Shown: in pieces, positions 12,607 through 51,822 of the stretch
Layout of the letters: the number at the start of each line of letters is the position of its first letter
How positions within the stretch are numbered: position 1 is the first letter of the stretch
DNA from: Mobula hypostoma
Taxonomy: Eukaryota
Length of the DNA: 64,000 nucleotides
Direction: 5' to 3'
Assembly (NCBI RefSeq): GCF_963921235.1
Contig: NC_086097.1
Location: 34,534,001 to 34,598,000, forward strand
Translations under genes and position numbers: made by a program
Notes under the pieces: generated by a model
What the model was told of the DNA's origin: nothing
The model's input: the letters and a program-made list of their open reading frames with translations, nothing else
Databases searched by the model: none

Positions 12607-13815
12607 GAACACGAGATTCTGCAGATGCTGGAAAGTCAGCAACTAACAAAATGACGGAGGAACTCAGCAGGTCAAGCAGCATCTATGAACATGAATAAAC
12701 AGTTGATGAGTTGGAATGGGGATATTGATTAAAATGCTTGGCCACTGGGAAATTTTGCTTTTGATGGTGGCCAACCACTTTATTTCCTACCCCACCCCTG
12801 TTCTGACATGTCAATCCATGCCCTCCTTTTCTGCCATGATGAGGCCACCCTCAGGGTGCCCATAAGATGTAGGAGCAGAATTAGGCCATTTGGCCCATCG
12901 AGTCTGATCCATTTCCCTCTCAGCCCCAATCTTATGCCTTCTCCCCATATCCCTTCATGCCCTAACCAATCAAAAATCTTTCAACCTTTGCCTTAAATAT
13001 ACCAATGACTTGGCCTCCACAGGCACCTGTGGCAATGAATTCCACTGAGTTACCACTTTCTGTTAAAGAAATTCCTTCTTATCTCTGTTCTAAATGGATC
13101 TATCTCTATTCTGAGGCAGTGCCCTCTGGTCTTCCCCACAATAGTCTTCTCCACATCCACTCTATCGAGGCCTTTCAACATTTGATAGATTTCTATATAA
13201 GATTCCCCCCTTATTCTTCTGAATTTCAGTGAGTACAGGCCCAGAGCCATCAAACGCTCCTCATGATAAGCCTTTCAATCCCAGGATCATTTTCATGAAC
13301 CTTCTTTGAAACCGCTCCAATATGAGCACATCCTTTCTTAGATTAATGGACCCAAAACTGCTCACAATACTCCAGGTGAGTCCTCAGCAGTGCCCTATAA
13401 AGGCTCAACATTACATCCTTGCTTTTATAGTCTAGTCCTCTCAAAGTGAGTGGAGGAGCAACACCTCATATTCCGTCTAGGCAGCCTCCAAGTGTTGATT
13501 TCTGCTTTTCCTTTTTTTCTTTCTTCTCCTCCTCCTTCCATTCCCCACTCTGGTCTCCTACCACTTCTCCTCACCTGCCCTTGGTGCCCTTTCTCCCATG
13601 GTCCACTCTCCTCTCCTTTCAGATTCCTTTTTAACAAGCCCTTTATCCTTTCTCATCCACCAGGCTTCACCTATCACCTTCTAGCTTGTCCTCCTTTCCT
13701 AGCCCCACCTTTTTATTCCAGTGTCAGTCCTGCCGAAGGGTTTCAACCCGAAATGTCTGTGATACTCTTCACAGATGCTGCCTGACCAGCTGAGTTTCTC
13801 CAACAGTGTGTTGCT
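12607..13815. mobile_element. Inverted Penelope fragments with a nested minus-strand CR1 3' end (~12864-13448)
   Basis: The PLE motif DEATLRV|EEQHLIFRLGSLQ is split by CR1 sequence (ORF 13050-13253 LGLYSLKFRRIRG...TRGH). pLTR arms at both ends. Confidence 0.75.
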
Positions 13816-14585: not shown

Positions 14586-15189
14586 ACTGGACTAGTCAAA
14601 GAACACTGAGGCTGTCTGCAAGAAGGGTCAGAGCCGTCTCTATTTCCTGAGGAGACTGAGGTCCTTTAACATCTGCTGGACGATGCTGAGGATGTTCTAC
14701 GAGTCTGTGGTGGCCAGTGCGATCATGTTTGCTGTTGTGTGCTGGGGCAGCAGGCTGAGGGTAGCAGACACCAACAGAATCAACAAACTCATCCGTAAGG
14801 CCAGTGATGTTGTGGGGATGGAACTGGACTCTCTGATGGTGGTGTCTGAAAAGAGGATGCTGTCCAAGTTGCATGCTATCTTGGACAATGTCTCCCATCC
14901 ACTACGTAATGTACTGGGTGGGCACAGGAGTACATTCAGCCAGAGACTCATTCCACCGAGATGCAGCACAGAGCATCATAGGAAGTCATTCCTGCCTGTG
15001 GCCATCAAACTTTACAACTCCTCCCTTGGAGGGTCAGACACCCTGAGCCAATAGGCTGGTCCTGGACTTATTTCATGGCATAATTTACATATTACTATTT
15101 AACTATTTATGGTTTTATTATTATTTAATTATTTATGGTGCAACTGTAACGAAAACCAATTTCCCCCGGGATCAATAAAGTATGACTAT
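14586..15189 (+). mobile_element. Rex-Babar/L2-type LINE, 5'-truncated
   Basis: ORF 14683-15054 (LRMFYESVVASAIMFAVVCWG...HPL...SFLPVAIKLYN), then AT-rich 3' UTR, AATAAA and a tatgact tail. Confidence 0.85.
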
Positions 15190-15242
15190 TGCGGGGCTCG
15201 GTTTCCCCCATCCACGGGCCACCGCCGAAAGTGTTCCCAGAT

Positions 15243-15840
15243 CGGAGCTCGGTCCTCCTATCTCCGACCGTGACCCCAGTGCGGAGCTCGGTCCTCCCAC
15301 TTGCGACCGTCACCCCAGTGTGGAGCTCGGTCCTCCCACTTGCGACCGTCACCCCAGTGTGGAGCTCGGTCCTCCCATCTCCGACCGTGACCCCAGTGTG
15401 GAGCTCGGTCCTCCCATCTCCGATCGTGACCCCCCACTGCGGAGCTCGGTCCTCCTATCTCCGACCGTCACCCCATGCGGAGCTCGGTCCTCCCATCTCC
15501 GACGTGTCCTGAGGAGCTCGGTCCTCCCATCTCCGACCGTCACCCCAGTGCGGAGCTCGGTCCTCCCATCGACCGTGATCCTAGTGCGGAGCTCGGTCCT
15601 CCCATCTCCGACCGTGACCCCAGTGCAGAGCTCGGTCCTCTCATCTCCGAACTTGTCCTCAGTGCGGAGCTCGGTCCTCCCATCTCCGACCGTCACCCCA
15701 GAGCGGAGCTCGGCCCTCCCATCTCCGACCGTGTCCTCAGTGCGGAGCTCGGTCCTCCCATCTCCGACCGTGACCCCAGTGCGGAGCTCGATCTTCCCAT
15801 CTCCAACCGTGTCCCCAGTGCGGAGAGCCGCTTCCCATCC
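15243..15840 (+). repeat. 39-bp GC-rich minisatellite, ~15 units plus one degenerate unit
   Basis: Consensus CGGAGCTCGGTCCTCCCATCTCCGACCGTGACCCCAGTG. Unit starts at 15243, 15282, 15321, 15360, 15399, 15440, 15478, 15512, 15551, 15587, 15626, 15665, 15704, 15743, 15782, 15821. Confidence 0.97.
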
Positions 15841-15958
15841 CTTATTTAACTCTGTTTACGTCGTCAGGACGCCAATGTGCGTGTCCCGGCCGCTGATTGG
15901 TTCGTGGGGTTTGACCCGGCGGGATCACGCCGCGCAGGACGATGGTCCATTATCTACC
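15841..15958 (+). promoter_or_regulatory. ATXN3 proximal promoter / 5' UTR
   Basis: CpG-rich. CRE-like half site CGTCA at 15862-15866, CCAAT at 15872-15876, inverted CCAAT (ATTGG) at 15896-15900, directly upstream of the ATG. Confidence 0.65.
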
Positions 15959-15982
15959 ATGGAGGCGATATTTCACGAGAAA
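15959..15982 (+). CDS. ATXN3: Ataxin-3 coding exon 1
   Basis: accATGG Kozak context, MEAIFHEK (24 nt), GTAAGT donor at 15983. Confidence 0.95.
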
Positions 15983-18554
15983 GTAAGTTGATGCGGAAAT
16001 TGTATTTAAAAACGTCGACGGTGGTGGCGGAGAGGTGCGGCGGGAATATCCCGTGGTGTTAGAGTGAAAGGTGGTTGCTGTGAAGCAACTGTAGACTCTC
16101 TGATAGCGAGAGACAGAACTATAGCTTAGTAATGTACTGAAGTCCTGTATCTTAGGGCTTCTTATCGGGAAGTGGGTGTCTGGTATCGGGTGTTTAAAGT
16201 CTGGGTGTGCAGGACAATAAGGAGACAAGAGGGGGCTGCAGATGCTGGAACCTGGAGCAATACGCAGAATGCATCTGTGGAGGGAAATGGACGGTCGAGA
16301 TCCTTCCTCTGTAGTCCAGATAAAGTCCATATTGAAGGGTCTCGACCCTGAACGTCGATTGTCCATTTCCCTCCACAGGTACTGCCTGATCCGCTGCGAT
16401 TTTTCCAACGCCTTTGTGCGTTGCTTGCAGGATAGTAACTTCATTTTTCCAAGGTGGTCAGAATGAAAAAAAATAGTGAAACGGGTTTAAAGCTGAATAG
16501 GCTGGGAAAGCTGAATGCTAATTTGAAGGTTCGACACCCAGAAATGCAGAACGGGTGGTCAAATGAATGATCAAAGAGATTTTAGGAAGTGTCTGAAAAA
16601 TCAGGATAAAAATAGTAGTGAGACAAAGGAATGGATGTACCCGATTTGGAATGGGTTCAATATCGAGGGTGGGGGGGAGGGGACTAAGTGGAAATTTAAA
16701 ACTTAATTTGGCAGGTAAATCACATACAGAGTAGGAGATGATAAACAGCCATATGTAGAAGAAAAGCTAAGTTTCAGGCTTATGGGATGAGTAGAAAGCT
16801 GGATTTCATCCATTATAACAGGATCTGGCTAATGAACTGAGGATGATTATAGGTATGTTAACAGATTTAGCAATACAACGTTACAGGGTTTAGAACCTTT
16901 GTGGGGAAGATGGTATGCTAATGAGGATTAATTGCAATGTTGAACAAGAAGTCCATTATTGCATTAAGGAGAGAGGATATTTCTAGACACTATGGGGACA
17001 GAGTTCAGAAAAAAAAATAGCGGTATACCATCGATAGTTAGTAGTAGTTGGAAGTGCAGTCACGTAATCAAGTTACAGAGAAGGTCCTTGTGGTGAACAG
17101 CAAGTATAAATTGGAAGTTAAGGTCCTGATTTGGGAGAAGGCTGACTGGCGTTAGACAAGCACGTGTGTAGGCAGTTGGGATTAGTTTGAATTGGTATCG
17201 TGGTTGGCACAGATGTGGGCCAAAGGATCTATTCCTGGTGCTATACTGGCCATATATGTTATTAGAAACCATAATCACAATTTGTGCTTGTCTCAAAGGC
17301 GAATTTCTCATCTGTATTTACTACAGAGATTTGAATTTACTGTGGCGTACATAGCAGTTGGAAAATTTGGAGGGGGAATTCTGGAACGAATTAACATTGA
17401 AACAGAAGAGAATCTGTATGAATAGTGAACTTAAAGGTGGATAAATCGCAAGGGCCTGATGAGATGTATCAGTGAATGAAAAGCAAGGAAATAAATCCCT
17501 GGGGCTCAGTGAAAATTTCAATCTTCTCTGGCCATGGATGAAATGCCAGATGACGGGACCAGCAAAGTCAGTACCTCTGTTCGAAAACTGCAGTACAGTT
17601 TAGCCAATTTAGTCTAATGTAAGTGGGGGGAGGGGAATAATGGAAACAGTTCTGAAGAGAACTGCATTTAGAGAGGCACAGAGAGGTTGTGCTAAGGACT
17701 GTCATGAATTATTTAATTGATTTTTTTCTCACACACTGGGTCATTGAGAGTCGTATGTTTGATAGAATCTAAATAGACTTTAGTCAAGATCCCACATGGG
17801 AGATTGATGAAAAGGATAGAACCCAGTGGATACAGGGCAGTTTGGCTTGGTGATGGGTATTGGTTGAGAGTTGATTTTGTGATTAAAAGTCTGTTGGTTT
17901 TGGTGCATTGCAGAGATCAACAGTGGGATGTTATTTGTTACATACACTAAAAATCCAGATGTGAAAGGAGGAGGTCTGATTAGTAAATCAGTAAATGACA
18001 TTAAGATTGGTGCTGTATAAAGTGAATGGGGAGGATGGGCTGAGTAGTTGATGATGTGAGGTGATGTGCTTTTAGAGGACTAATACGGTTACATTATATA
18101 GTATGAATTGTAAAACTCAAGAAGTAATAAAGAACAAGAATCGTGGTGTACGATAGCAAATATCACTAAAGACAGCAAGACAAGCAAAATATGATACTTC
18201 CCTTCAATAGCTAAATCAGAAAGCTGATGGTATAATGTTATAAAACATTTCGGCACATACGGTGAAGTGTCTGTGGAGCTAAGGAAGGATATGATGGAAC
18301 TGAAGGGAAGCAGAGCAGGTTTGCCAGGATGTTGCTGGTAAGGACTATTTCAGTCGAGAGGAGAGACCAGACAGTTTGTGCTTATTTTCTTTGGAATGGA
18401 GAAAGCTGGTTGGGGGAGGGGAAATGTGCTTGGGGTATACAAAGTTGTGAGGACCATAAAGTACGAAGTGAAAAACATTTCTCCTTGGCAGAGGGCTTCA
18501 GGTAATGGATATGAGATTTTTTTGAGAAGTATGCCAGATGAAAAGTGAAATGTG

Positions 18555-19186
18555 TGTAACACTCACTTTGCCAAGTGACATAATCTTGGGGGTGGTAACC
18601 TCCCTGCCCAGCCAAATTTTAGAACTCCCATTTGGGTGGATGCTGCGTGAAGTGTCCCCTGTGTCAAATCAGTACCCCAAAATAACAAACGGTACACAAT
18701 ATTCGGTAAACAAGTAAGATTTTATAACTCTTACTTGGACTATGAGACTAGTAGAGGACAAAATATAAAATAAAAGGCGCCAAGAATTTATTTAATCAGT
18801 TCGTGCACAATTCGTTGGAGTTCACGATTTTCCTTCGCTGATTCCTCCTTCGATCGGCGTCAATCACTGTCTCCTGCCGGAGCCCGGAGGGTCGGGCAGC
18901 CCACCGACTCCTCAAGTCGCGTCTCCTCTCTTCATTCCCCTCGCGCCTTCTGCCCAAAGCCCGCGAAAACCAACAGCTTTCACACAAACAAGAAAGAATA
19001 AAATCTTGCCCGTTGGTTAGCAACTGAATTCCAAAGTCCCGTTGTCTCTACCTATAACCCAAACTTGCTGCTACAGAGAACCCATTACCCCAGCAGTTAA
19101 CATTACAGAGAAGCCATTTTATTATAACACTACAGAGAAGCCATTTTATTAGCCTTAGCAGTTAACATAAAAGAGAAACACTTACA
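18555..19186 (-). repeat. 3' LTR
   Basis: tgtaacac...cttaca, direct repeat of 22687-23297. Adjacent polypurine tract GTGGGGGGAGAG (minus strand, 19187-19198). Confidence 0.93.
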
Positions 19187-19290
19187 CTCTCCCCCCACTA
19201 AATTTAGTCATGTCCTCATGACGTTGAGATAATTCGCCAACCCTTCCTGCAAACACAAAAAACCCAATCCAGGTACCGACGGTGACATCG

Positions 19291-19803
19291 TAAACATAAA
19301 ATACTCTGCAGATGCTGGCGTCAAAGCAACACTTACAACACGCTGGAGGAACTCAGCAGGTCGGGCAGCATCCGTGGAAATGATCAGTCAACGTTTTGGG
19401 CTGGAAACGGAAGAAGGAATAGGGGAATTCTCCAACTTCCGGTAATTCCCTCCCCCTCCCTTCCCCTATCCCTATTTCACTCTGCCCCCTCCCCCAGCTG
19501 CCTATCACCTCCCTCATGGTTCCACCTCCTTCTACTACCCATTGTGCTTTCCCCTATTCCTTCTTCACCTTTCCTGCCTATCACCTCCATGCTTCCTCTC
19601 CCCCACCCCTTTATATTTCCCCTTACTGGTTTTTCACCTGGCACCTACCAGCCTTCTCCTTCCCACCCTCCCCCCACCTTCTTTATATGGCCTCTGCCCC
19701 TTCCCTCTTCAGTCCTGACGAAGGGTTCTGGCCCGAAACGTTGACTGATCGTTTCCACGGATGCTGCCCAACCTGCTGAGTTCCTCCGGCGTGTTGTGAG
19801 TGT
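19291..19803. mobile_element. Short foldback Penelope element nested in the LTR element
   Basis: Inverted pLTR arms (~19326-19408 vs ~19728-19803) and a degenerate 17-bp flanking duplication (taccgacggtgacatcg 19274-19290 / taccaacagtgacatag 19804-19820). Confidence 0.8.
19709..19748 (+). ncRNA. Minimal type I hammerhead ribozyme motif (Penelope pLTR)
   Basis: Stem I TCAGTC/GACTGA, core CTGACGA, stem II GGGT-tctg-GCCC, GAAA, then CG-TT. Confidence 0.7.
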
Positions 19804-20221
19804 TACCAACAGTGACATAGCTCCCCAACAATAGACCTCACATCCTGCTCCCCAGGTGCTACACAGGCCAACCTATCTGGGAGTTTCCTAATCCTCTGAG
19901 ACCTCCGTACCCCCTCACCTAACCCTTCAGGCTTGGACACTACTGGGGATACTTCGGGTCTGCTTGCCAAATCCTCTCTTAGTCTATCACTCATGCCCCC
20001 CTGCAACTCAGAACCCCCTGTCTCGTGTTCAGGCCCCGCTGTCTCTCCTTCAGGGTCCTGCAGTAACCCAGACTGCCCACAGTTAGCCTCCCCCCCACCT
20101 CACCTGACTCAGTGGGAGAAGGGCCGGGAGTCTCTTCCTCAAACAAGGGGAAGCTAGCAAAAGGCAGCAGGTACCGCACCTCCACCTCATCATCCATCCA
20201 ATCCGTATTCTTCTCCTTTTC

Positions 20222-20805
20222 CTCCATTTGTAGCTGCTGTTTGGTTTTCTCCAAGCTGGAGCACTTGGCCTGGGCTGCTTCTGCAGCCTCTTCAGCCTCC
20301 TGTAATCGAGATGTCAGCTTCATCTTGGACTCCTCCAACTCTCGCCGCAGTCACAGCAGTTCTGACTCACGCTTCTTGTTCATCTCTATCTGGAACGCAG
20401 TTACTCCACCATCTTCTTCCAATCTATCAGTAAGGCCTTCTAGTTCCCTGGTAAGATCAGCTCGCCGTTTCTCGACCTTGGCTCTCATAGCTCGCTCTGC
20501 ATTCAACTTCTCCTCCAGTTCCTCAGCCTGGGCCTGATAATCTTCCTCTGAAGAGCAGCAGTTAAGGATTGTTCATCCTCTAGTTTAGTGCTCACTAAAC
20601 TTATCTCCAGCTATTTCTTCTTAATGACTTCTTCCAGGTCAGCCTTCAGTTTTCCCATTTCATTTAGGCTGTCAGTGGTCATCTCCAGGTCTCCTGCAAG
20701 CTTCCGCTTCCCTCTTCCGAGATCTGTCCGCAATTGCTTCACCTCCTCTGAATTGTATTCAGATTCCCCTCTCTGTGCTCTCAGTTTTCTGTTGGCCTTA
20801 GTTGT
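20222..20805 (-). pseudogene. Captured sarcomeric myosin heavy-chain rod fragment (MYH16-like) inside the LTR element
   Basis: Translates to TKANRKL...[123 protein letters not shown]|[36 protein letters not shown], with 2 stops and 1 frameshift. Confidence 0.92.
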
Positions 20806-22665
20806 TGGGATCTGGTAACATCCACTCCTCAGATCCAGTACATTAAACCACTTCTCACCACAAAGACAGACCAGCGCGTCTTCGACCCTCGGGACCGCAT
20901 ACTGGTCAGGGATGGTGCACCTGTTCAGAGTCCTATGGTCCACACACATGCGTACCTCCCCTTTCTTCTTCCTGGCCACTACCAGTGGGGATGCAGAGAG
21001 GCTTCGAAACCCAGTGATGATCCCCTTTTCCTTCAACTCACACAAATGCTGCCGTGCAGCCTCCACACCTGCAGGGACCCGTCGCCGCGACCTTTCCACA
21101 AACGGGGTGTCCTTAGCAGTCAACTCTTCCCCCTCATGGTATTCCGGAACGCCCACTATGAGGGCTTCTTTTTCAGACACTCCGGGAAATTTTAGAGTCC
21201 CCATCACTGTTGATACTTCCCCGGGCTGTAACACCATTGACTTTGACTGGGTGAACCACACAGTCCCTCGTTTAAATTCGGTACCCAGCCCGCTGCTGCC
21301 ACACATGTCCCCAAGCAGCTCTCACCTGCCTTCTTCCTACAGGCCCCCATGAGCCTCCTCACCAGCAGGGTGTTGGTCCCCTCCAGAATCGAAGCGCTGC
21401 CCGTCTTGACAGTGTCGGGCCACGTCAGCACTAACGATTCCCGAACCTCAGACACCCACACACCAGTCTCCGAGAACTCCAGTTTCATTGACCAATAACC
21501 GTCATATGGATAATCACCAGCACTGATACCCCAAAACTCCAGTGCCCTGAATGGTGTCAAGGGTAAATGCTTCAAATACCAGTGGTAAAATGCGTAGTAC
21601 AGTAACTTGACCTGCGACCCAGTGTTGAGGATGGCTTTAGCATAGTTTCCATCTATCCGTAACGACACACCGGAGTGTGGTCCCACTAAGCCTTCATGAA
21701 TAGGGTCCTTTTCCTTTGGGAGTTCCTTGGTACATTGCTGGGAACGTGTTCCCCCAGAGACACCAGGCCATTTGACCAGCTGAACAAATGGGGGAGGGGC
21801 TATCTGATCCATCCTTAACTTATCCACCTCAGCCGTCTGACTGACCCACCCCCCCACGCCGCAACCAACTTAGCTGTCTCTCTAGCCGAAAAAGATACGA
21901 TGAAAGCTTTTCCCCATTCTCCTGACTCATGTTTTGAAACACCACCCCGAGCTGCATTTCGCTCCCAGAAGAACCAAACGCCTTGTCCCGCACTTGCAGA
22001 TAACTGGCAGCTGTCACTACAGGGTAATGGAACCTGCCCGTTCTAACAACGTCAGCGGCCTGCCAATTCAAACTTTTAACCAACCTCTTGTCGCTTTTCG
22101 TCATCCAAGCACTGCGCCTCATCTGACAACTGAGAGGTCTGTTCTGCCCACGTCTCATACGCCTCCGCTCCTTTAGCGGTGGGCATTATTCCACAAACCA
22201 GGCAGAACCTGCCATAGCTGGAACATTTATTCACCAAAGAAACAAAGGCGGACACTACCTCAGAATTCTCACTCTTCACTGGTGGATGAGGACTAATTAA
22301 ACATACCAAATCCGACCACTCTTTCCCCTCACTCCTGACAGTATGGACAGCCCATGGCCCCACCTCACCTGGGGCACCAATAGACACTGGCAATCCCAGC
22401 TCCGTGACATCAGCGCTAGTCTGCACTAAAGCAAGGTCTGAGCCTGCCATTTTATTCAACTTTCGCGCTACGATTTCAACTTTGCCAACAGCTTTAACCA
22501 TACTCAAAAATTAAATTAACAATCCATCCGGGGTACAAATATCCATCCCACTGAACCCGTTACTAACCGCAACACCACAAAGGCACACATTACTAACCAC
22601 AATCCCAGAGAGGCACACCAGCACTGATTTAAACAGGTCGATCACACGGCATCCCACAGAATCGA

Positions 22666-22683
22666 ATCCCAGACAAGCCCCCA
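22666..22683 (-). other. Primer-binding site, tRNA-Pro
   Basis: Minus strand TGGGGGCTTGTCTGGGAT matches the tRNA-Pro PBS TGGGGGCTCGTCCGGGAT with two CpG-type transitions. Confidence 0.9.
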
Positions 22684-22686
22684 CAT

Positions 22687-23297
22687 TGTAACACTTGTTT
22701 TGTCTAGTGGCATATCTCGGGGGTGGTAACCCCCCACCTGCCCGGCCAAACTTTAGAACTCCCGTTCGGGTGGATGCTGCATGAAGTGTCCCCTGTGTTA
22801 AATCAGTACTCCAAAATAACAAACAGTACACAATAGGTGGTTAAACAAGTAACATTTTACTTGGACTACGAGACTAGTAGAGGACAAAATATAAAAGAAA
22901 AGGCGCCAAGAATTTATTTAATCAGTTTGTGCACAATTCGTTGAAGCTCACAGTTTTTCTTCACTGATTCCTCCTTCGATTGGTGTCGACCTCTGTCTCC
23001 TGTCGGGCAGCCCACAGACTCCTCAAGTCGCGTCTCCTCTCTTCATTCCCCTCGTGCCATCTGCCCAAAGCCCACGAAAAACAACAGCTTTCACACAAAC
23101 AAGAAAGAATAACATCTCACCCATTGGTTAGCAACTGAATTCCAAAGTCCCATTATCTCTACCTATGACCCAAACATGCTGCTGTAGAGAACCCATTACC
23201 TCAGCAGTTAACATTACAGAGAAGCTATTTTATTCTAACACTACAGAGAAGCCATTTTGTTGTCCTTAGCAGTTGACATAAAAGAGAAACCCTTACA
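22687..23297 (-). repeat. 5' LTR
   Basis: Direct repeat of 18555-19186; PBS 3 nt inside. Confidence 0.93.
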
Positions 23298-25189
23298 TGT
23301 GGAACACTTGATTGAGGGGTAATGGAGACAGGTACTCTTGCAGTATTTCAGGCATATTTAGATGATCATTTGAAACACTGGTGGAGTTGCTTCCAGTTAC
23401 AAAGGTTCGATCCTGACATCTGGTGCTGTCATTGTGGTGGTTGCACAATCCACATGTTGCTGTAAGGGTTTCATGCAGGTGTTCCGAGTTCATCTCACAT
23501 CCTAAGTTAGAGGTTCTCAACCTGGGGTCCTTGGACCCTTGGTTAATGGTAGGGGTCCGTGACATAAGAATGATAACTTGGTGCATTAGTGTGCCATGCA
23601 AATTGCCTCTGGTGTGTATGTGAGTGATAGCATCTGGCAAGTCGATGGGAATGTGGGAGGAATAGATGGGGGTTGGTGAAAAATGCCTGTCTGACAATCA
23701 ACATGGGCTGGAGACCCTCTAACTCTGCTTGACACTATAAGGCTAAGGTTTGAATGCAAGAAAATGCGATTAGTATGATTGATACTTGATGGTTAGCACA
23801 ACCACGTTCGATCAGTTTCCATGCCGTTTATCACTAAGACGGTTTGGATGAGGTATTCCAGAGCTTAAAATTGGGCATTTGGGGATCTGAATTCCTCAGT
23901 ATTGTGTAGATTGAGAATTCCTGAGGTGGAGGGGAGCAAGGATGAGATTTGCAATGCAAATGTATGTTTGAGGTATGTTGAACCAGCAGACTGGTAGTTT
24001 GTTGATTTTGGAGATTGACATCTGAGTTTGGATAGTCTCAAGTGGAGATATAGTTCAACCATCTGTAAGCTTAAGATCACTTGAAAACCCTGCCACAGGT
24101 ACTGCCTTTCACCAAGTTATATTTAATTATCATACCACTGCTTGTTGACACATGTTGCTTTCCAGTTAAGCAATCTCTTGATTTTAAAATCCTCTTTCTT
24201 GTTTGCATACCCTCCTTGGTCATCCTTGTCTATCGCTAATTTCCTACATTTCTATAATTCTCAGAGATAACTGTGCACCTTAGATTCTGCATTCTTGGTT
24301 GCTCTACCACTGACCTATGGTAATTTCTGGAATTTCTACTGTGAACCTCTCCACTTCTCTGCTCTGCTCATGTAACGTGTTGTTTAATCAAACTTTTGGT
24401 CATTTCCCCTTGGGTTTCCATTGAGGTGTCAGACTTTGTTTTATCATGCTCCAAAGGCGTTTCCTGGTGCTTGGGGGGAAATTCAAGCAGCATCAGCACT
24501 GAAGGACAAGTAATCGGCTTGAATTCCAGCTGTTGCTTGTCAAAAGTCAGAAGCAAAAAGCACACCCTCCTCCCCTTTGCATTTGTAGAACACATTGTTT
24601 TATTCTAGGGGCTTGGGGGCTGGGGGGGGCGGGGACATGTGCATTTTGATAGGCCTCTGTAGACTACGTGACTCTGTTCTACCATGAACCACCTGCTGGG
24701 GACCATGCTACCATCAACCATGCTGGGAAGAGCTCCAAAAATTGTTTTAAATTTCTTTGTGAGATCAATGTGTCTAACAGGCAACTTCTACTATACGCAC
24801 AATCCCAATAAATATTGCAAATTGTGCTATATATTCAGAGGAACTATTTTAATAAAATAACTTGGAAATATTTTGTATCTACTATCTATATTAATACAAA
24901 TCAAAGCTACATCTTTTGAATAAAAAAGTACAAATGCTGGGAAAATTTGGCAGGCCAGGCAGCACCTGTGAAAATAAATAATTAAAGAGGGATTATTGAC
25001 CTGAAATGTTAATTCTTTCTTTTTTCAAAATGCCAAGATTTTTTTCCAGATTTTTCTGCTTTTAATTCAGATTTCCACTGTCTGCATTTTTTGAATGTAG
25101 GTTTGGAAATCTAGCTCAAGGGTTTACCATATTTGCTTGATTTTCCTCAATTCTGCTTCAATGGCTATAGCCCAGTAACAGTTACATCC

Positions 25190-27734: not shown

Positions 27735-29030
27735 TATTCAACCTCCGAGTACTGTGAGGGAAATACAGCCAGCATCAACAGGACATCTTCCACGTGTTCA
27801 TAGACTTCAAGAAAGTATTCACTAGGGTGTGGCATGATGCTCTCTGGGCCACAGTGAAGAGGTACAACCTGGGCCAGAAGCTGACCCAAACCATCAAGCA
27901 GCTTTACACCAAAGCTAACAGTGTGGCACTGCCAAAGGGTCTTGGCCCGAAATGTCAACTGTACTTTTTTCTATAGATGCTGCCTGGCCTGCCGAGTTCC
28001 TCCAGCATTTTGTGTGTGTTGCTTGGATTTCCAGCATCTGCAGATATTCTGTTGTTAGTGCAGTACTTGTTCAAGGCACAGGTGGAGAGTGGTTCCACAC
28101 ATCAGTTAGAATCCAACAAGGCTGCCTCCTTTCACCCACGCTGTTCAACATTTTCTTGGAGCAAATAATGACAGATGCCCTGGACCATGTCAGCACAGTC
28201 AGTATCGGAGGACAGATAGTAACCAACCTCAGGTTCACTGATGACATTGTGGGCTGGCAGGGAGTGAGGATGAACTGGCCCGCCTTGTGAACCATCTGGA
28301 TGGTACATCTAGCAGATATGGCATGGAGATCAGCACAGAGAAAACCAAGCTGATGAGAAACAGCGAGGATCCAATCACGGCAAAAATCACAGGCAGTGGA
28401 CAAGAACGAGAGACAGTCAAACAGTTCAAGTACCTTGGCACCACCATCAACCAAGAAGGATCAAAGCCTGAAGTCCTTCCAGGGCAATCCAAACAACAGC
28501 AATGCTGGCTAACCTAAAACCAATCTGGAGAGACAACAATATCACTCTCAAATCCAAGTTGAAACTCCGTCACGCACTTGTGCTCTCCATCTTTTTGTAT
28601 ACATGTGAATCATGGACTCTGACAGCTGAACTGCAAAAGAAGATCCAGGCAATGGGAATGAGATGTTTCAGAAGGCTCCTCAGCATCTCCTATACTGACC
28701 ATGTCTCAAACGATGAAGAGAAAAGAACCATCACCCAGCACATGAGACAAAGATCTACTCTCCACAGTAACGAAAAGGAAACTGAAATGGTATGGCCACA
28801 TGAGAAGATCAAGTGGACTCTCAAAGACCGTTCTTCAGGGAACAGTGCAAGGGGAAAAGAAAAAGGGGCAGACAGAGGAAGAAATAGACAGACAACATTG
28901 CAGAGTGGACTGGAGAGAGCTTTGCCACAACCCAGGCACTCGCCCACAACTGTGAGAGATGGGGACAACAGGTGCAGCTCTCATCTGTACAGCACTCCTA
29001 CAACCCAGGCAGGTTGCGGGATCTATAACT
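27735..29030 (+). mobile_element. RTE-clade LINE inserted into a V-SINE (27675-27734 + 29030-29265), with a Penelope pLTR nested at ~27925-28056
   Basis: ORFs FIDFKKVF, QQGCLLSPTLFNIFLE, NLRFTDDI, FKYLG, YTCESWTL. The SINE head and body are split around it. Confidence 0.82.
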
Positions 29031-29837: not shown

Positions 29838-30250
29838 GACGAGAGAATCTGCAGATGCTGGAAATCTAAGAACATAAGGACATAAGAAATAGGAGCAGGA
29901 GTAGGCCATCCGGCCCATCGAGCCTGCCCCGCCATTCAATAAGATCATGGTTGATCTGTCCGTAAACTCAGCTCCACCTACCTGCCTTTTCTCCATAACC
30001 CTTAATTCCCTTACTATGTAAAAATCTATCTAACTGTATCTTAAATATATTTAGTGAAGAAGCTTCAATTGCTTCCCTGGGCAGAGAATTCCACAGATTC
30101 ACCACTCTCTGGGAAAAACAGTTTCTCCTCATCTCCATCCTAAATCTTCTCCCCTGCCGAAGGGTTTCGGCCTGAAATGTCGACTGCACTTTTTTCCATA
30201 AATACTGCCTGGCCTGCTGAGTTTCTCCAGCATTTTGTGTGTGTTGTTTA
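29838..30250. mobile_element. Penelope pLTR pieces flanking a minus-strand CR1 3' end (~29868-30150)
   Basis: Chimeric ORF 29968-30327 joins pLTR-derived sequence to CR1 FSQRVVNLWNSLP. CR1 tail taagaacataaggacataaga. Confidence 0.7.
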
Positions 30251-36863: not shown

Positions 36864-38797
36864 GTAAGTGTGTGATTTTAAGCATGTAACCTGTTACTTT
36901 TCGATTAAATTTAACTTTATTTGTTATCCTCCTTGACCCCTGACTCCCCATTTTACAGCATACCATTTGAAAGTGATGAGAAAGGATTATTATCATTCTT
37001 TAACTTTTGTAATTGATACATTTGTTAAATACCGTTAGAAGAAAAAGAAACTAGCAACTTAAAGTTAACTGTGTGTTTTAATTGACTCTTGTTCATTGCT
37101 TGCATAATTCTTTATTTTTGTCATTTTTTCTGGCCTTTTTTCCACAAAATATTCTAAATGCAATATAGTTAGCAATTTCTACATCACATGTCTGATAACA
37201 CTTCCTGAGGGGTATTAGTGATGTTTGCAGAATTTGAATTTCGAACTTTTGTTATCAGTTTCAACCGTAAATGATCTTTAAGTACATGCAATGTTCAAAA
37301 CAATTTGCACCTAACCTAACCCAAAGGATCTGAAAGTGTGGTTGGGTGGGGTTAGCAGTTTTGTTCATTCTGCTGTAGTGGTTAATGTTGTCTCGGTAGT
37401 AATTCTACATTGTTTTAAATATATTTTGATGCTTATACACAAGGGATGCAATGGAATTAATCAGATTTGGTTGGTCAATAATGGATAGCCACATGGACAA
37501 TACTTTCTTCCTTATCCTCCATGTTAATGTTTTGCAATTAACAATAAAGAAAAATAATGTTCTTCAATGGGAAGGCAAAAGGCAGCTTGATATCTACACT
37601 AGTCCATTTCAGAGTTAATGCTGCACAATGACAGACCCTTCAAATAAACCATACCCATGCTCACTATCAAGTCCAGCTTTCCAATTCCTATAAACTTCCT
37701 TGCTTTGGTAGTACACTCAGCTCTCAAAGGGCCTTTCCCACTTTTAGTATTTTATACCTACTGTAACCTCAATTTTTTTCTTTATCCCTTGATATCGCTT
37801 GACACCCCTTGACACAAATTTGTTGGATTTACTGTCATTAACTTTCACCTTTATGGGAATATGTTGGTCTTATGCACGCACCATTTCAATTTTGAATGTT
37901 TCCCTCTGGTCACTCACTTGCAAATAGTTGTTGCAGGTCTACATTAGCAAAGTCTTGGCTTACCACATTGAAATCAGCTTTTTGCCAGTTCAAGACACTG
38001 ATTTCTGATCAATTGTCACTTCCTATAACTGCCTTGAAACGAACAGTTATCGTTGTCTCACTGTCTCTTTACCATTTGCCTGGCTACGTTTCCTAAGATT
38101 AGGTCTAGTATTGACCTTCCTTTGGTAAGATTGTCTAAATACTTACATAGGTTCTTCTGTCTGCATTTTAAAAATTTTACCCTCATCTAATCCACTTGGA
38201 TTTAAGTCCTCCCACTTAACATTGGGAAAGTTGAAAACTCCTATTATTCTTACACTGCTGTGAATTGCTGGCATTTCTGGTCCTCTCCCTCCTGCTGACT
38301 GCAGTGTATTTGAAACAAAGTGACTGCCGCCTTTTCAAACATAAGCTCCACCCATGTGATTTAATCTAAAGACCTTTCCAGGAAATCCTCCCTCATTATT
38401 GTAGTAATGGACTCCTGTAATCAATAATTCAATACCATATCTTATATCCCTGCCCCTACCCTCTCCTTTTTAAACCGTGTCTCCAATGGCAACAATATCA
38501 TATTTCCATTTACTGATCATCCGCTCAGTTCATCACCTTTCCCTGTCATATTTCTTGCATTAAAGTAAATGCAGTTTAATCTGCCTATCATCCCATTTGC
38601 CTGATCGAATCTATATCTGTTCCGCCTACTAGACTGACCTAATGTTTCTTCTATATGTATTTGACTATACCTGCAGTCCAATTGTACATCTATTCTGTGT
38701 CCTATTTGCTTGCAAACTCAACTTAAATCTTCTCATAAGAGAACCAGCAAACCCCTTTGCAAGGATGTTGAAGTGTTCTGGTTAAAGTGCAACTCAT

Positions 38798-41526
38798 ATA
38801 ACCATATAACAATTACAGCACGGAAACAGGCCATCTCGGCCCTTCTAGTCTGTGCCGAACTCTTACTCTCACATAGTCCCACCGACCTGCACTCAGCCCA
38901 TAACCCTCCATTCCTTTCCTGTCCATATAGCTATCCAATTTAACTTCAAATGACAACATCGAACTTGCCTCAACCACTTCTGCTGGAAGCTCGTTCCGCA
39001 CAGCTACCACTCTCTGAGTAAAGAAGTTCCCCCTCATGTTACCCCTAAACTTTTGCCCTTTAACTCTCAACTCATGTCCTCTTGTTTGAATCTCCTCCAC
39101 TCTCAATGGAAAAAGCCTATCCACATCAACTCTATCTATCCCCCTCATAATTTTAAATACCTCTATCAAGTCCTCCCTCAACCTTCTACGCTCCAAAGAA
39201 TAAAGACCCAACTTGTTCAACCTTTCTCTGTAACTTAGGAGATGAAACCCAGGTAACATTCTAGTAAATCTTCTCTGTACTCTCCCAATTTTGTTAACAT
39301 CTTTCCTATAATTCGGTGACCAGAACTGTACACAATACTCCAAATTTGGCCTTACCAATGCATTGTATAATTTCAACATTACATCCCAACTCAGGGAACT
39401 ATGCACCATTATTCCTAGATCCCTCTGTTCTACTGCATTCTTCAATGCCCTACCATTTACCATGTATGTCCTATTTTGATTAGTCATACCAAAATGTAGC
39501 ACCTCACCCTTATCAGCATTAAACCCCATCTGCCATCTTTCAGCCCACTTTTCTAACTGGCCTAAATCTCTCTGCAAGCTTTGAAAACCTACTTCATTAT
39601 CCACAACGCCACCTATCTTAGTATTATCTGCATACTTACTCATCCAATTTACCACCCCATCATCCAGATCATTAATATATATGACAAACAACATTGAAAC
39701 CAGTACAGATCCTTGAGACACACCACCAGACACCGGCCTCCAATCTGACAGACAGTTATCCACCACTACTCTCTGGCGTCTCCCATCAGCCACTGCTGAA
39801 TCCATTTTACTACTTCAACAATTGAACCTTCCTAACTAACCTTCCATGTGGAACCTTGTCAAAGGCCTTACTGAAGTCCATATAGACAACATCCACTGCT
39901 TTACCCTCATTAACTTTCCTAGTAACCTCTTCAAAAAATTCAAAAAGATTTGTCAAACATGACCTTCTGTGCACAAATCCATGTTGACTGTTCCTAATCA
40001 GACCCTTTCTATCCAGATAATTATATATACCATCTCTAAGGATAATTTCCATCAATTTACCCACCACTGACGTCAAACTCACAGGCCGATAATTGCTAGA
40101 TTTACTCTTAGAACCCTTTTTAAACAATGGAACAACATGAGCAATACGCCAATCCTCCGGCACCATCCCCGTTTCTAATGACATTTGAAATATTTCTGTC
40201 AGAGCCCCTGCTATTTCCACACTAACTTCCCTCAAGGTTCTAGGGAATATCCTGTCAGGACCCGGGGACTTATCCACTTTTATATTCCTTAAAAGTGCCA
40301 GTACTTCCTCTTCTTTAATCATCATAGTTTCCATAACTACTCTACTTGTTTCCCTTACCTTACACAATTCAATATCCTTCTCCTTAGTGAATACAGAAGA
40401 AAAGAAATTGTTCAAAATCTCCCCCATCTCTTTTGGCTCCGCACATAGCCATCCACTCTGATTCTCTAAGGGACCAATTTTATCCCTCACTATCCTTTTG
40501 CTATTAATATAACTGTGGAAACCCCTTGGATTTATTTTCACCTTACTTGCCAAAGCAACCTCATATCTTCTTTTAGCTTTTCTAATTTCTTTCTTAAGAT
40601 TCTTTTTACACTCTTTATATTCCTCGAGCACCTCATTTACTTCAAGCTGCCTATATTTATTGTAGATCTCTCTCTTTTTCCGAACCAAGTTTCCAATATT
40701 CATTGAAAACCATGGCTCTCGCAAACTTTTAACCTTTCCTTTCAACCTAACAGGAACATAAAGATTCTGTACCCTCAGAATTTCACCTTTAAATGACATT
40801 ACTACATATTCTCTATTACATCCTTCCCATAAAACAAATTGTCCCAATCCACTCCTTTTAAATCCTTTCGCATCTCCTCAAAGTTAGCCTTTCTTCAATC
40901 AAAAATCTCAACCCTGGGTCCAGTCCTATCCTTCTCCATAATTATATTGAAACTAATGGCATTGTGATCACTGGACCCGAAGTACTCTCTCTGTCACCTG
41001 ACCTATCTCATTCCCTAACAGGAGATGCAACACTGCCTCTTGTCTGGTTCTATGTATTGCTGCAAAAAACCATCTTGCACACATTTTACCAACTCCAAAC
41101 CATCCAGCCCTTTTACAGAATGGGTTTTTCAGTCTATGTGTGGAAAATTAAAATCTCCCACAATCACAACCTTGTGCTTACTACAAATATCCGCTATATC
41201 CTTACAAATTTGCTCCTCCAATTCTCGCTCCCCATTAGATGGTCTATAATATACTCCTATAAGCGTTACTACACCTTTCCCATTCCACAATTCCACCCAA
41301 ATAGCCTCCCTAGACTAGTCCCCTAATCTATCCTGCCAAAGCACCACTGAAATATTTTCTCTGACAAGCAATGCAACACCTCCGCCTCTATCACCTCCGA
41401 TTCTATCACACCTGAAGCAACGAAATCCAGGAATATTTAGTTGCCAATCACACCCCTCCAGCAACCATGTTTCACTAATAGCTACAACATCATATTTCCA
41501 GGTATCAATCCATGCTCTAAGCTCCA
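38798..41526 (-). mobile_element. Relatively young CR1 LINE ORF2 (EN + RT) nested in an older CR1
   Basis: ORFs with VVAISETWL (endonuclease), YRPVSLTS, DFSKAFDKV, QGSVL and YADN. Short tandem tail; candidate TSD AACTCAT (38791-38797 / 41527-41533). Confidence 0.92.
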
Positions 41527-42384
41527 AACTCATCCAGCTGATGTACATCCCAATTTCTTCAGAAGTGGTCCTGATATCCCCAAACTCTCTAATGTCAACC
41601 CTGCTATTCCATTCCTTTAGCCACATGTTCATCTGAGCTGACGTTCTACTCATTGGCATTTGGTACCTAAATCCATGATGCAGAACCTCATTCACCTTAT
41701 TACTTATACTGTTAGTACCAATGTTAACCCTTAGTTCTTGCTGTTTACTCCGCTCCTTGAGAATGCCCTTCATCTGTGCCAGCACATCCTTGACCCGGTA
41801 CCAGAGAGGCAACACAGCATCCTGTATGTATACTTAAAACCTCTGAAATGCCTGCTTGTTCCCTTCTCTATTAAATCACCTATCTCTCTTTCCCTCATAG
41901 TGCAGCTGGTCTTGTCCGAAAACGTTAACCTCTAATATTTTCTATTTCAGAAACAGTTTTGAAGTGAGATGCACTCTGGTGTTTTCCTGCCTTCCCCTTC
42001 CCATCTGCCTTTCTCTAACCGGTGGTCACCTCATCCTTCTCTGAAGATCTATTAAAACTGCAGGATGGCGTCCTCTAAAGCTTGTTATCCACTGAACTAT
42101 CAACGTGGCACCTCCAGCCAGTGATGAATCTCTGAAACCCAGTACTCACACTGTGAAAAGAGAGTATATTTCACTAAGCCCACAGAAAGGGTTTCCAAAC
42201 CCCACATACTGCAGGCTGTACAGTACATGGGAATAGGCATCACACTGTCCTACTGTTTATAATCTAATCCCTATACTTTTCTTGAAAAAGATAAACGGTT
42301 TTGATCTTTTTATTATTTAGAGATACAACACAATAACAGGCACTTCCAGCCCAATGAAATCACACTGGCTAACTATTTTAACCT

Positions 42385-44398: not shown

Positions 44399-45786
44399 GT
44401 CATCGTCATGGCTATCCCTCGAGGTTGAGGATGATGGTCTTCGTTCTGTTGATCTACTTGTGGGCTCTCAAATGGCTTATGAGTCCAATCTTGGCTTTGA
44501 AAGTTCTTCCACATTCAGGACAGGTAGTTCCAGATGGCAGATCGGGCTTTGGTTGTTGCTGCCTCTCTTTCCATTTTCTTCTCTTTTCTTCTAATTCTGC
44601 ACATCTGCTGGCTTCGAAAGTTGCTGTTCCTTCTCGGATGATGGCTTGCCAGAGTTTCCTGTCCTTGGCATTAGTTTCCCAATTGTTGATTTCAATGTTA
44701 CATTTCTTTGTGTTGGCTTTTAAGACGTCTTTGAGTCTCTTCTGTTGTCCACCTCTTTTACGTTTGCCTTCTTTAAGCTGGGAGTAGAAGATTTGTTTCA
44801 GCAGACGTTCGTCTTTCATCCAAACAACATGACCGCTCCATGTTAGTTGGTTCTTGATGACGTAGGCTTCAGTGCTTGTTGTTTTTGCTTCATTTAGCAC
44901 ACTGACGTTGGTTCTTCTATCTTCCCAGCTGATATTTAAGATGTTTCGAAGACAGCGTTGATGGAACTTTTCAACTGCCTTCAGATGTCGTCGGTATGTT
45001 GTCCAGGTTTCTGATGCATACAGGAGCGTTGGGTTTACCACTGCTTTGTACAGTAACATTTTGGTGTCTGTTCGGATGTCACGATCTTGAAAGACTCTTG
45101 TCGGAGACATCTAAAAGCTGTTCCAGCGCATTTAAGACAATGTTGGATCTCGTCATTAAGGTCAACATTGGAGGAGAGGTGACTTTCAAGATAAGGGAAG
45201 TGGTCCACGTTTTCCAGGGTTGTTTCACCAAGTTGGATTGATGGTTCTATCTGATTTGTCTCAATTAATGACGGTTGATAGATGATCTGAGTCTTCTTGG
45301 AATTGATGGGAAGTCCAAGTTTCGTGTATGCACGGTTGAAGGGAGTCAGAATCTGTTGCAGATGGTTTTCTGAAAGAGCTGCAACACTATTGTCATCTGC
45401 GTATTGGAACTCGATGAGGGAACTTGTGGATGTCTTTGTTTTGGACTTGAGACAGGCAAGATTGAAAAGTTTTCCATCTGTTCTGTAGACAATTTCGATT
45501 CCTGGGGGTAGGTCGTCCTTGATAATGTGGATGATTGTCGCAATGAAGATGGTGAACAAAGTTGGGGCAATCACGCATCCCTGTTTTTACTCCTGATCTA
45601 ACTTGAAAAGGCTCATAGTTACTGTTGCTGACCATGACCGTGGCAAGAATGCCATCGTGGAGGAGTCTCAGGATTCGAATGTACTCTTCAGGGCATCCAT
45701 AGGTGGATAGGACATCCCATAGGAGTTCCCTTGATACCGAGTCAAAGGCTTTGGTGAGGTCGATGAATGCCATGTACAAAGGTTGA
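44399..45786 (-). mobile_element. RTE-clade LINE nested in Tigger
   Basis: FIDLTKAFDSV, APTLF, QYADD, LLYASETWT, and a C-terminal CPECGRTF...SHLRAH zinc finger. Confidence 0.9.
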
Positions 45787-48724: not shown

Positions 48725-49150
48725 TGGCACAGTGCTTCCTCTACAACAGAGAAACCAAATTCAGATTAGGTAATTATTTTGCAGAACACCTCCTCTTAGT
48801 CCCTGATTTCCTGGATGCCTTGCAGTATAATTCACCATCTCGCTCCAACTCTTGCCTTTCTATTTGTGGCCTTTTGCTTCGTTATGAGGTTCAGCCAAAG
48901 CTTGCGGAACAACACCTCGTCTTCTGCAATTTGCAGTCTGTAGAACTCAGTAGTAAATTCTGTACATTTACATCACTCACTCTTTCTTTCTGTTTGTCTC
49001 TGAATCAGCTATTTCTGAGTCCTGAGGAAGGGTCTCATCCCAAAACGTCGACTGTTAATTCATTTCCATAGATGCTGCCTGGCCTGCTGAGTTCCCCCAG
49101 CATTTTGTGTGTGTTGCTTTGGATTTCCAGCATCTGCAGATATTCTCCTG
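48725..49150 (+). mobile_element. Decayed Penelope 3' end with pLTR
   Basis: ORF 48712-49071 (RLGNYFAEHL; LAEQHLVF) followed by the pLTR tail. Confidence 0.7.
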
Positions 49151-50735
49151 TCCAATGGCAAGTTATCTTTTTTCCCTTTTTTCCTAAGTTTGGCCTGCTG
49201 AGCGTGTCCTACAGTCTTCTCATTAGCAACACAAACAAACAAGCTTAATTTCTGATTTGCACTGCCTGGTAAGGTCATTTAGTCTCAGCCTATCAGAAAT
49301 ATTCACTTTGGACCACCCACTTTTCATCATCTTTCATTGTTAGCTAAACTAATGTGTTTTCTCTCTTTTGCAGTTCTGGTGAAAGATCCCAGCCCTGAAA
49401 CATTAATCCTGTTTCTTTCTGCAGATTTGCGTGACCTGCTGAATATTTCCAGTATTTTCTATTTTTATGTACATTTTATGGTTTAACTTGGCAGGAATCT
49501 GAGTTTTTTGCTTAAAAATAAAAAAAAAGGAAAAGTCGGCTGATGTTTATTTGGCAGTTATAAACTCTTGTACTGATAGCTATATAACAGATGGCTAGAT
49601 TTGTTGAATAGTTTGAGACTAAGCATAATGGTACACAGAGGCAATGACCTCCATTTTGAGTAATGGTAAGCAATGAGAAAAATTGTAAATGAGTTGTATA
49701 CACTGAATATCTAATGTACTTGTTTCTCTAGATGCCATTCATTTGTTACATTGACAATTCAGTTATTCCCAAGGTACATTGAACTTGTGTTTAGGAAAGC
49801 AATATTTCTAATTGCAGTTTATTTTGGGGGGAAAAAAATTCAAGCTTATGTTAAAATTGGCTGGAAATTTAAAATGACCGGATGGCTCTGACAGGGTCAT
49901 ATATCTATGGTACAAAACAAACAGAACTGTAAAATCGTATTTTGCTTTCTCCTGTAGAATGATGTGTAAATCTGAAGAATCCAGCTCAGAGTAATTGAAA
50001 TTTTTTTACATGAATTCTTGATAATAAACTTAATGCAAGATTTGACCTTTTTTGGAATTAAAACTGGAGTTGTAAAATTATTATTCCCATTTTTTAATGT
50101 ATATACCCACCATATACAGTGTGTATTTTATTTGCATCTTTTCTATTAATAGCTGATTATTTCACAGTGAGCGCAGTGATGCATGATTAGTCTTGTGACT
50201 CCTCTATGGCCTCTGTGATTCAACTAGTCATTGATGTGTTGTACTTTGGGAGTCTAATTGAGTTTTTCTGAAATAGTTCTTAGCACTATTTTATGCCATT
50301 TTTTCTCTCCCTAAACTGCCACAATACTCCTCTGATTGCTCTGGCATTCCATTGATGATTTCAGGGAAGATTTTAATTTTTTTTTCATTCAACGGTTTAA
50401 AAATCTTGGATGCTATAAATAGGACAGCAAAAAACCAATCTGGTAATGCGGATGTCCACAGACGTCAGGGTTTGTGTGGATAAGGAGGACAGAAAGGACC
50501 TGGTTCTAAGCTAAATTATTCTGTGAAGTATTCATGACATTGCTCCAACCTCCAACCAAACTACCTCTAGTAAGTCATTGTAAGAAAAATTCTAGTGAAT
50601 TACTTCAATCTGTAAAACCATGATTTGGCATGGTCTACTATAGAAACAATGAATAGTAATCTAACACCCACAATTACAAATGAAGTATTGTACCATTTCA
50701 CCATGAAAAACTCCGATCCTATACCTTGATTTTAT

Positions 50736-51822
50736 CTGCTCTCACTCCATCCTCCCGCCACCCCACTAGGAATAGGGTTCCCCTGGTCCTCACCTACCAT
50801 CCCACCAGCCTCCGGGTCCAACATATTATTCTCTGTAACTTCCGCCACCTCCAACGGGATCCCACCACTAAGCACATCTTTCCCTCCCCCCCTCTCTCTG
50901 CATTCCGCAAGGATCGCTCCCTACACAACTCCCTTGTCCATTCGTCCCCCCCATCCCTCCCCACTGATCTCCCTCCTGGCACTTATCCGTGTAAGCGGAA
51001 CAAGTGCTACACATGCCCTTATACTTCCTCCCTTACCACCATTCAGGGCCCCAAACAGTCCTTCCAGGTGAGGCATCACTTCACCTGTGAGTCGACTGGG
51101 GTGATATACTGCGTCCGGTGCTCCCGATGTGGCCTTTTATATATTGGCGAGACCCGACGCAGACTGGGAGACCGCTTTGCTGAACATCTACGCTCTGTCC
51201 GCCAGGGAAAGCAGGATCTCCCAGTGGCCACACATTTTAATTCCACATCCCATTCCCATTCTGACATGTCTGTCCACAGCCTCCTCTACTGTAAAGATGA
51301 AGCCACACTCAGGTTGGAGGAACAACACCTTATATTCCGTCTGGGTAGCCTCCAGCCTGATGGCGTGAACATTGACTTCTCTAACTTCCGCTGGGCCCCG
51401 CCTCCCCCTCGTACCCCATCTGTTACTCATTTTTATGCACACATTCTTTCTCTCACTCTCCTTTTTCTCCCTCTGTCCCTCTGAATATGCCTCTTGCCCA
51501 TCCTCTGGGTCACCCCCCCCCCGTCTTTCTTCCCGGACCTCCTGTCCCATGATCCTCTCGTATCCCCTTCTGCCTATCACCTGTCCAGCTCTCGGCTCTA
51601 TCTCTCCCCCTCCTGTCTTCTCCTATCATTTTGCATCTCCCCCTCCCCCTCCAGCTTTCAAATCCCTTACTCACTCTTCCTTCAGTTAGTCCTGACGAAG
51701 GGTCTCGGCCTGAAACGTCGACTGCGCCTCTTCCTATAGATGCTGCTTGGCCTGCTGCGTTCACCAGCAACTTTGATGTATGTTGCTTGAATTTCCAGCA
51801 TCTGCAGAATTCCTGTTGTTTT
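50736..51822 (+). mobile_element. Young 5'-truncated Penelope-like element (Neptune-type) with uninterrupted GIY-YIG endonuclease ORF
   Basis: PCKRNKCYTC linker, VIYCVRCSRCGLLYIGETRRRLGDRFAEH...VATHFN. Perfect 12-bp TSD CCTTGATTTTAT (50724-50735 / 51823-51834). Confidence 0.93.
51688..51723 (+). ncRNA. Minimal type I hammerhead ribozyme motif (Penelope pLTR)
   Basis: AGTC-CTGACGA-A-GGGT-ctcg-GCCT-GAAA-C-GTC-GACT; predicted cleavage after C51719. Confidence 0.7.

Follow-up and report, generated by a model that had tools for sequence, protein, structure and literature searches.

An intronless myosin heavy-chain fragment in a Ty3/Gypsy-type element of Mobula hypostoma points to a non-autonomous, gene-carrying family in rays

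Introduction

Acutely transducing retroviruses have had replication genes replaced by spliced cellular sequence and are helper-dependent. Maize Bs1, a long terminal repeat (LTR) element that lacks pol and carries fragments of host genes, is the classic parallel; it exists in 1-5 copies with the same switch points, which have been read as the outcome of secondary retroposition. LTR-mediated retrocopies have also been described in animals (Tan et al. 2016, Genome Res, PMC5131818). In these, an intronless piece of host mRNA lies in the same sense within a discontinuous LTR element and has no poly(A), the junctions fall at short similarities, and some of the chimeras were retroposed again as non-autonomous elements. 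Here we describe a case of this already known kind, LTR-mediated retroposition as in maize Bs1, from a ray. The stretch of DNA analysed, called the window below, comprises 64,000 nucleotides (nt) of Mobula hypostoma (GCF_963921235.1, contig NC_086097.1, positions 34,534,001 to 34,598,000, forward strand). Our subject is a Ty3/Gypsy-type LTR element in this window, in which most of pol has given way to ~195 codons of sarcomeric myosin rod that read in the sense of the element.

The anatomy of the element, its intronless myosin, the missing catalytic domains of its pol and the junctions that it has in common with dispersed copies lead us to regard it as probably a decayed copy of a non-autonomous, myosin-carrying Ty3/Gypsy-type family of rays, from a lineage with PNMA-like gag, that captured an mRNA through a template switch and was then multiplied in trans. 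With the transducing retroviruses it shares the exchange of replication genes for spliced cellular sequence and an apparent dependence on a helper; unlike them it is intracellular and Gypsy-type, with no env seen, a structural coiled coil as cargo and no hint of an effect on the host cell. With Bs1 it shares the loss of pol and the burden of host gene fragments. That plant element drew on three parental genes and there is evidence for an expressed hybrid protein, whereas the ray element drew on one parental gene (in two pieces) and there is no evidence of function. The animal retrocopies cited above (PMC5131818) are young, mostly single-copy and known from fly, mosquito, zebrafish, chicken and mammals. 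In contrast, the ray element is old and is found in cartilaginous fish, in several genera, on many chromosomes and in structural variants. Cartilaginous fish join the animals whose LTR elements copy host mRNA, and the family would be an unusually clear vertebrate case of a chimera that itself became dispersed, long-lived and non-autonomous.

Results

A delimited element without the catalytic core of pol

The LTR pair was located as direct repeats (blastn and a repeat finder); all features of the element are listed in Table 1. As is usual for Ty3/Gypsy elements, the LTRs run from TG to CA (TGTAAG...TTACA), the target duplication lies within the range of 4-6 bp (4 bp here), and a primer-binding-like site stands by the 5' LTR and a polypurine tract by the 3' LTR. 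The original prediction, made from the DNA letters, had described just such a delimited element, and its two LTRs, TGTG duplication, primer-binding-like site and purine tract are all present. The tRNA-Pro that it named would be a candidate primer. No tRNA genes were found in the window or in the contigs L001-L003 that are introduced below, and there were no Rfam matches.

Autonomous relatives are available in two short contigs (L001 and L002; ENA ERZ21784934), found by a whole-library search and cluster look-up. Their gag is PNMA-like with a zinc knuckle, and their pol (P0160) has 1522 amino acids (aa) with the domains RVT_1 (residues 400-559), RNase H (644-773) and integrase (936-1102). They resemble the window element in gag type, LTR ends, primer-binding-like site (form and spacing, in L002) and purine tract, and are 50-70% identical to the N-terminal part of its pol as protein. 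They differ from it in having a full reverse transcriptase (RT), RNase H and integrase and in having no myosin. A native origin of the myosin-like stretch in the element lineage was rejected, because these relatives carry RT-RNase H-integrase in its place. L001 and L002 were likewise rejected as helper or partner of the window element, since their LTR bodies fail to align with the window LTRs and their pol DNA is just 72-78% identical. Positions 1-12782 of L001 hold the autonomous relative twice in tandem, with a period of ~6.79 kb; the two units could be tandem elements with one LTR in common or could be a product of assembly.

Measured against P0160, the window copy has kept residues 1 to ~462 and ~1327 to 1522 and has lost 463-1326, a span that takes in the rest of RVT_1, RNase H and integrase. 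The gag matches residues 32-315 of the L002 gag at 36% identity, across two frames (tblastn). The N-terminal part of pol is 72-78% identical to L001/L002, with the match stopping at 20807 (blastn); it contains at least one frameshift and lacks a stretch of ~120 codons that the relative has. The open reading frame (ORF) at 20611-21306(-) is a single chimeric frame of 231 aa, of which residues 92-173 match Ty3 reverse transcriptase (PDB 4ol8, 7q5b; E 1e-13) and residues 168-231 match Myosin-7 1020-1083. The RT domain is of Ty3 type and is represented by its N-terminal third alone. A succession from protease to the N-terminal half of RT had been predicted; the RT part stands on this match, and the protease is placed by position alone, as the N-terminal region of pol gave no Pfam or PDB sequence match to a protease. 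Downstream of the myosin, the tail of pol matches P0160 at ~1327-1365 (E 1e-4), 1443-1483 and 1480-1522, the second of these through the RRSQRIRKLPDRL stretch (54% identity, E 2e-8). The predicted return to a Gypsy pol tail at ~20222 is thereby supported, as is the predicted absence of YxDD, RNase H and integrase: neither Pfam nor tblastn with P0160 found any trace of RT palm, RNase H or integrase in the element. The order protease-RT-RNase H-integrase is not present in the window copy, and because RNase H and integrase are absent it is a non-autonomous derivative.

Two intronless blocks of sarcomeric myosin

Pfam Myosin_tail_1 is detected in the element, and further ORFs match Myosin-7 at residues 1123-1170 (E 1e-12) and 1386-1427 (E 1e-7). 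Since the match to Myosin-7/-4 has an E value of 1e-12 and non-muscle myosins score just ~5e-3, the source was a sarcomeric myosin. These protein matches, and the orientation in the sense of the element, agree with the earlier claim of ~190 codons of myosin II rod. The claim of a single stretch does not hold, as the cargo consists of two non-adjacent blocks that meet at an ELEE(S/A)K motif, found at both sites; the jump between them skips ~200 rod codons. Taken together, the two blocks contain 2 stops and 1 frameshift.

Intron positions were mapped from L003, which comprises 20 kb of a multi-exon MYH gene belonging to a genome other than the source genome. It was retrieved by a search with a 115-aa ORF, whose matches were true myosin exon fragments alone, one of them leading to L003. 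The introns of L003 are bounded by AG/GT at about residues 1131/1132, 1160/1161 and 1383/1384; one exon begins at Myosin-7 residue 1161 and is preceded by an exon of 87 nt, and another boundary falls between ...ELEEAK and KKLL.... The window myosin is contiguous across all three intron positions and, as is characteristic of LTR-mediated retrocopies, parental introns are missing. This continuity indicates that the captured template was spliced mRNA.

Both ends of the myosin fall within the coding sequence, the 3' end lying at about residue 1427 of ~1935. We found no poly(A) or A-run at the end of the myosin and no duplication flanking it; the host piece is framed instead by the discontinuous pol of one LTR element (~462 / ~1327), the arrangement that distinguishes LTR-mediated retrocopies. 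The mRNA 3' end, poly(A) and 7-20 bp duplication of a processed pseudogene made by a long interspersed nuclear element (LINE) are not there. Such a myosin pseudogene could in principle have landed inside an ordinary Gypsy element, with both trimmed by later deletions, and the LINE-like ORFs in the window place the machinery in this genome. Given the lack of poly(A) and duplication, the end of the myosin far short of residue ~1935, and the recurrence of the same junctions on further chromosomes and across species (see below), we consider this extremely unlikely. The alternative that the original prediction had itself allowed for, a later insertion of a retrocopy with its own target duplication or poly(A), fails in the same way, as neither is present and the junctions recur in other copies.

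At the internal jump, both sites in L003 read GAGCTGGA(G/A)GA(G/A), encoding ELEE, which fits a switch guided by sequence similarity. The 3' myosin/pol junction is GGAGGA-rich on both sides.

Related copies in other ray genomes

Other copies were found by protein searches and compared at the protein level; most of them are gene models, in which some sequence may have been left out as predicted 'introns'. The most continuous view is given by Hypanus sabinus XP_059806128.1 (P0069), a single uninterrupted ORF of 807 nt that runs from RT, including the region of the YxDD position, through a short RNase H remnant into the same myosin. Word-based searches added five models in M. hypostoma (P0151, P0154, P0155, P0156 and P0159), one in M. 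birostris (P0152, in a VPS13 intron), one in H. sabinus (P0153) and two in Narcine bancroftii (P0157 and P0158). Scans of viral_contigs and metagenome_contigs gave no further copies. The M. hypostoma models sit on five chromosomes (256, 193, 80.6, 70.9 and 66.7 Mb) and those of H. sabinus on two (187 and 53.9 Mb). The predicted non-autonomous, gene-carrying Gypsy family is consistent with these chimeric copies in M. hypostoma, M. birostris and H. sabinus.

Two switch points recur among these copies. The internal myosin jump is common to the window, P0153, P0155 and P0159 (...RESELL-LW-ELEESKKKL-RLQEAEE...), and the myosin-to-pol junction to the window, P0152, P0153, P0155 and P0156 (...KQQL-IEE-GKNTD-DDE...PFA-FP-EEE...), each count covering the copies whose models reach that far. 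An assembly chimera in which a myosin gene was fused to a Gypsy element would not be expected to recur in independent assemblies, as the internal and 3' junctions do, nor to contain myosin without introns, and we see next to no chance that the locus arose in this way.

Spread of a single capture by segmental duplication, instead of retrotransposition, has in its favor that the flanking DNA of the other copies is unseen. It is nevertheless very unlikely, as the window copy is bounded by an LTR pair and a 4-bp duplication of its own, and the copies are on five M. hypostoma chromosomes in differing gene contexts (a VPS13 intron; an Ig V-set gene). A target duplication of its own has been shown for the window copy alone; elsewhere the evidence is shared switch points at the protein level. 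The copies within M. hypostoma are just 27-85% identical as protein and are therefore old; their structures also vary from copy to copy and preserve a record of several successive internal rearrangements.

Mobula and Hypanus belong to the Myliobatiformes and Narcine to the Torpediniformes. The Narcine models are 76-80% identical to the myosin part of the window element and have family-specific residues, making the presence of the family in Torpediniformes probable.

The NCBI models in question bear names such as 'myosin heavy chain, cardiac muscle isoform-like' and 'putative uncharacterized protein MYH16' and are copies of the chimeric family, in the case of Narcine probably so. As myosins, P0151-P0159 and P0069 are probably annotation artefacts, and 'myosin heavy chain ...-like' or 'MYH16' models in Mobula and Hypanus, and probably in Narcine, should not be counted as myosin genes.

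The RT/myosin junction of the window copy

The original prediction took the switch at ~20805 for the point of capture, and here the other copies speak against it. Most of them have more RT, followed by an RNase H remnant, and their myosin begins ~50 or more codons further upstream, at about Myosin-7 932-967. Because other copies enter the myosin upstream, mostly from the RNase H remnant, the RT/myosin junction near 20805 is secondary and not the original capture point. The window copy would then be a shorter derivative, in which the RT fingers became joined to myosin ~1019, either in a subsequent template switch or through a subsequent deletion.

If the latter, the window copy may have been inserted with a longer interior and shortened by deletion in place in the genome, without any switch of RT. 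We treat this variant of the same family history as a serious possibility, although not the favored one: other copies do carry the longer interior, no second copy with the RT/myosin junction of the window was found, and the element is old and otherwise decayed. Against it, the junction stays in frame within the 231-aa ORF, which a random deletion would achieve in 1/3 of cases, and the family copies vary in structure among themselves.

Proposed capture by template switching and mobilisation in trans

We infer template switching and mobilisation in trans from what is known of LTR-element replication and from the animal retrocopies (PMC5131818). In the founder, reverse transcription of the element RNA would have switched onto a co-packaged, spliced mRNA of a sarcomeric myosin heavy chain and then back, replacing most of pol by same-sense myosin rod sequence, with an additional jump within the myosin at the repeated ELEE(S/A)K motif. 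Copying in trans would be possible because the chimera kept LTRs, primer-binding site, purine tract and gag; RT and integrase of autonomous relatives could have copied it onto many chromosomes. The amplification in trans that had been proposed for the element accords with dispersed copies on several chromosomes, and the mobilisation itself is how we would explain them. The window copy would have been inserted with its 4-bp duplication and would then have gained stops, frameshifts, ~9% divergence between its LTRs and a nested repeat.

Several points weigh against this account of a captured and mobilised family. The other copies are seen without their LTRs or target duplications, mostly as gene models; the RT/myosin junction near 20805 is present in no other copy found; and the Narcine models have no clear element part (E 0.07). 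The intron positions come from a MYH gene of another genome than the source. Microhomology at the junctions between element and myosin would have to be judged from stand-ins for the true parental myosin gene and the autonomous partner, the nearest relative being just 72-78% identical in pol with LTR bodies that do not align.

In-frame junctions and the question of a fusion protein

All junctions that lie inside uninterrupted ORFs are in frame. They comprise the passages from RT into myosin and from myosin into the pol tail, and those from RT into the RNase H remnant and from this remnant into myosin, as seen in the window ORFs 20611-21306(-) and 19991-20338(-) and in P0069. This pattern may reflect ascertainment, as the searches were protein-based. 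All four family junctions and the private one of the window are in frame, and a more far-reaching reading is that the chimeric frame was maintained for a purpose: the founder may have made a gag-pol-myosin coiled-coil fusion that aided its own spread (e.g. by oligomerising in particles), or the host may have taken over one copy as a gene in rays. We give this a slim chance.

Domestication of the chimera, or of some copy, as a host gene for a gag/pol-myosin coiled-coil fusion protein could likewise point to the in-frame junctions in every uninterrupted ORF seen and to the NCBI protein models predicted at several loci. The window copy has stops or frameshifts in every part, the copies are 27-85% identical and structurally unlike each other, and the in-frame pattern is biased, as the copies were found via protein databases. 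We therefore hold domestication to be highly improbable.

Table 1. Features of the myosin-carrying element and its nested repeat, in window positions
Feature	Position	Strand	Evidence
Whole non-autonomous Ty3/Gypsy-type LTR element, 4743 nt	18555-23297	-	LTR pair, target duplication, internal homology to autonomous relatives L001/L002
Target-site duplication TGTG (plus-strand letters), upstream copy in element sense	23298-23301	.	
5' LTR, 611 nt, TGTAAG...GTGTTACA	22687-23297	-	Pairs with 3' LTR
Primer-binding-like site, begins TGG (TGGGGGC), 3 nt inside from 5' LTR	22659-22683	-	Counterpart at same place in L002
Broken gag with PNMA-like capsid (at least 1 frameshift, at least 1 stop)	21847-22528	-	Pfam PNMA E 7e-13
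pol N-terminal part: protease-position region and first ~60 RT-domain residues	20806-21779	-	tblastn to P0160 residues 1-462
Myosin block 1, sarcomeric rod, ~Myosin-7 1019-1184, intronless	20341-20805	-	PDB matches; contiguous across two L003 intron positions
Myosin block 2, ~Myosin-7 1383-1427	20222-20340	-	PDB match E 1e-7; L003 exon ends
First part of C-terminal pol tail, ~P0160 residues 1327-1483, with at least 1 frameshift	19805-20221	-	BLASTP E 1e-4 and 2e-8; blastn to L001/L002
Nested repeat, not part of element, 516 nt, 79-nt inverted arms	19289-19804	.	L001 uninterrupted there
End of pol tail including polypurine tract	19187-19288	-	blastn 80-83% to L001/L002
Polypurine tract GTGGGGGGAGAG, adjoining 3' LTR	19187-19198	-	Kept in L002
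3' LTR, 632 nt, TGTAAG...GTGTTACA	18555-19186	-	Pairs with 5' LTR
Target-site duplication TGTG (plus-strand letters), downstream copy in element sense	18551-18554	.	

Decay of the window copy and its surroundings

The window copy is decayed and has no evident present function. Stops and frameshifts are spread over its gag, N-terminal part of pol, myosin and tail (the counts for gag, pol and tail being lower bounds). In a global alignment the two LTRs are identical in 550 of 607 columns (90.6%; Kimura two-parameter (K2P) distance 0.10), with CpG-type changes making up 18 of the 57 differences. The nested repeat is flanked by a 14-nt duplication (19275-19288 and 19805-19818), and its arms are 91% complementary (DNA fold z -12.7). 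Partial copies of this repeat occur elsewhere in the window near 1974-2149, 12618-12694, 27968-28048, 30145-30249, 49018-49144, 51688-51762 and 62856-62974.

The window is rich in repeats. Other retroelement remains are found at 38816-41815 (-), 45038-45574 (-) and 50726-51481 (+), and comprise LINE-like ORFs for endonuclease and RT, an RT fragment beside a C2H2 finger ORF, and a GIY-YIG ORF. A tandem array at 15236-15825 has 15 copies of a 39-nt unit with 86% matches and lies within the ORF 15182-15991. GC skew is strong in two places, reaching +0.33 at 16001-18000 and -0.42 at 38001-42000, the latter over the LINE-like ORFs.

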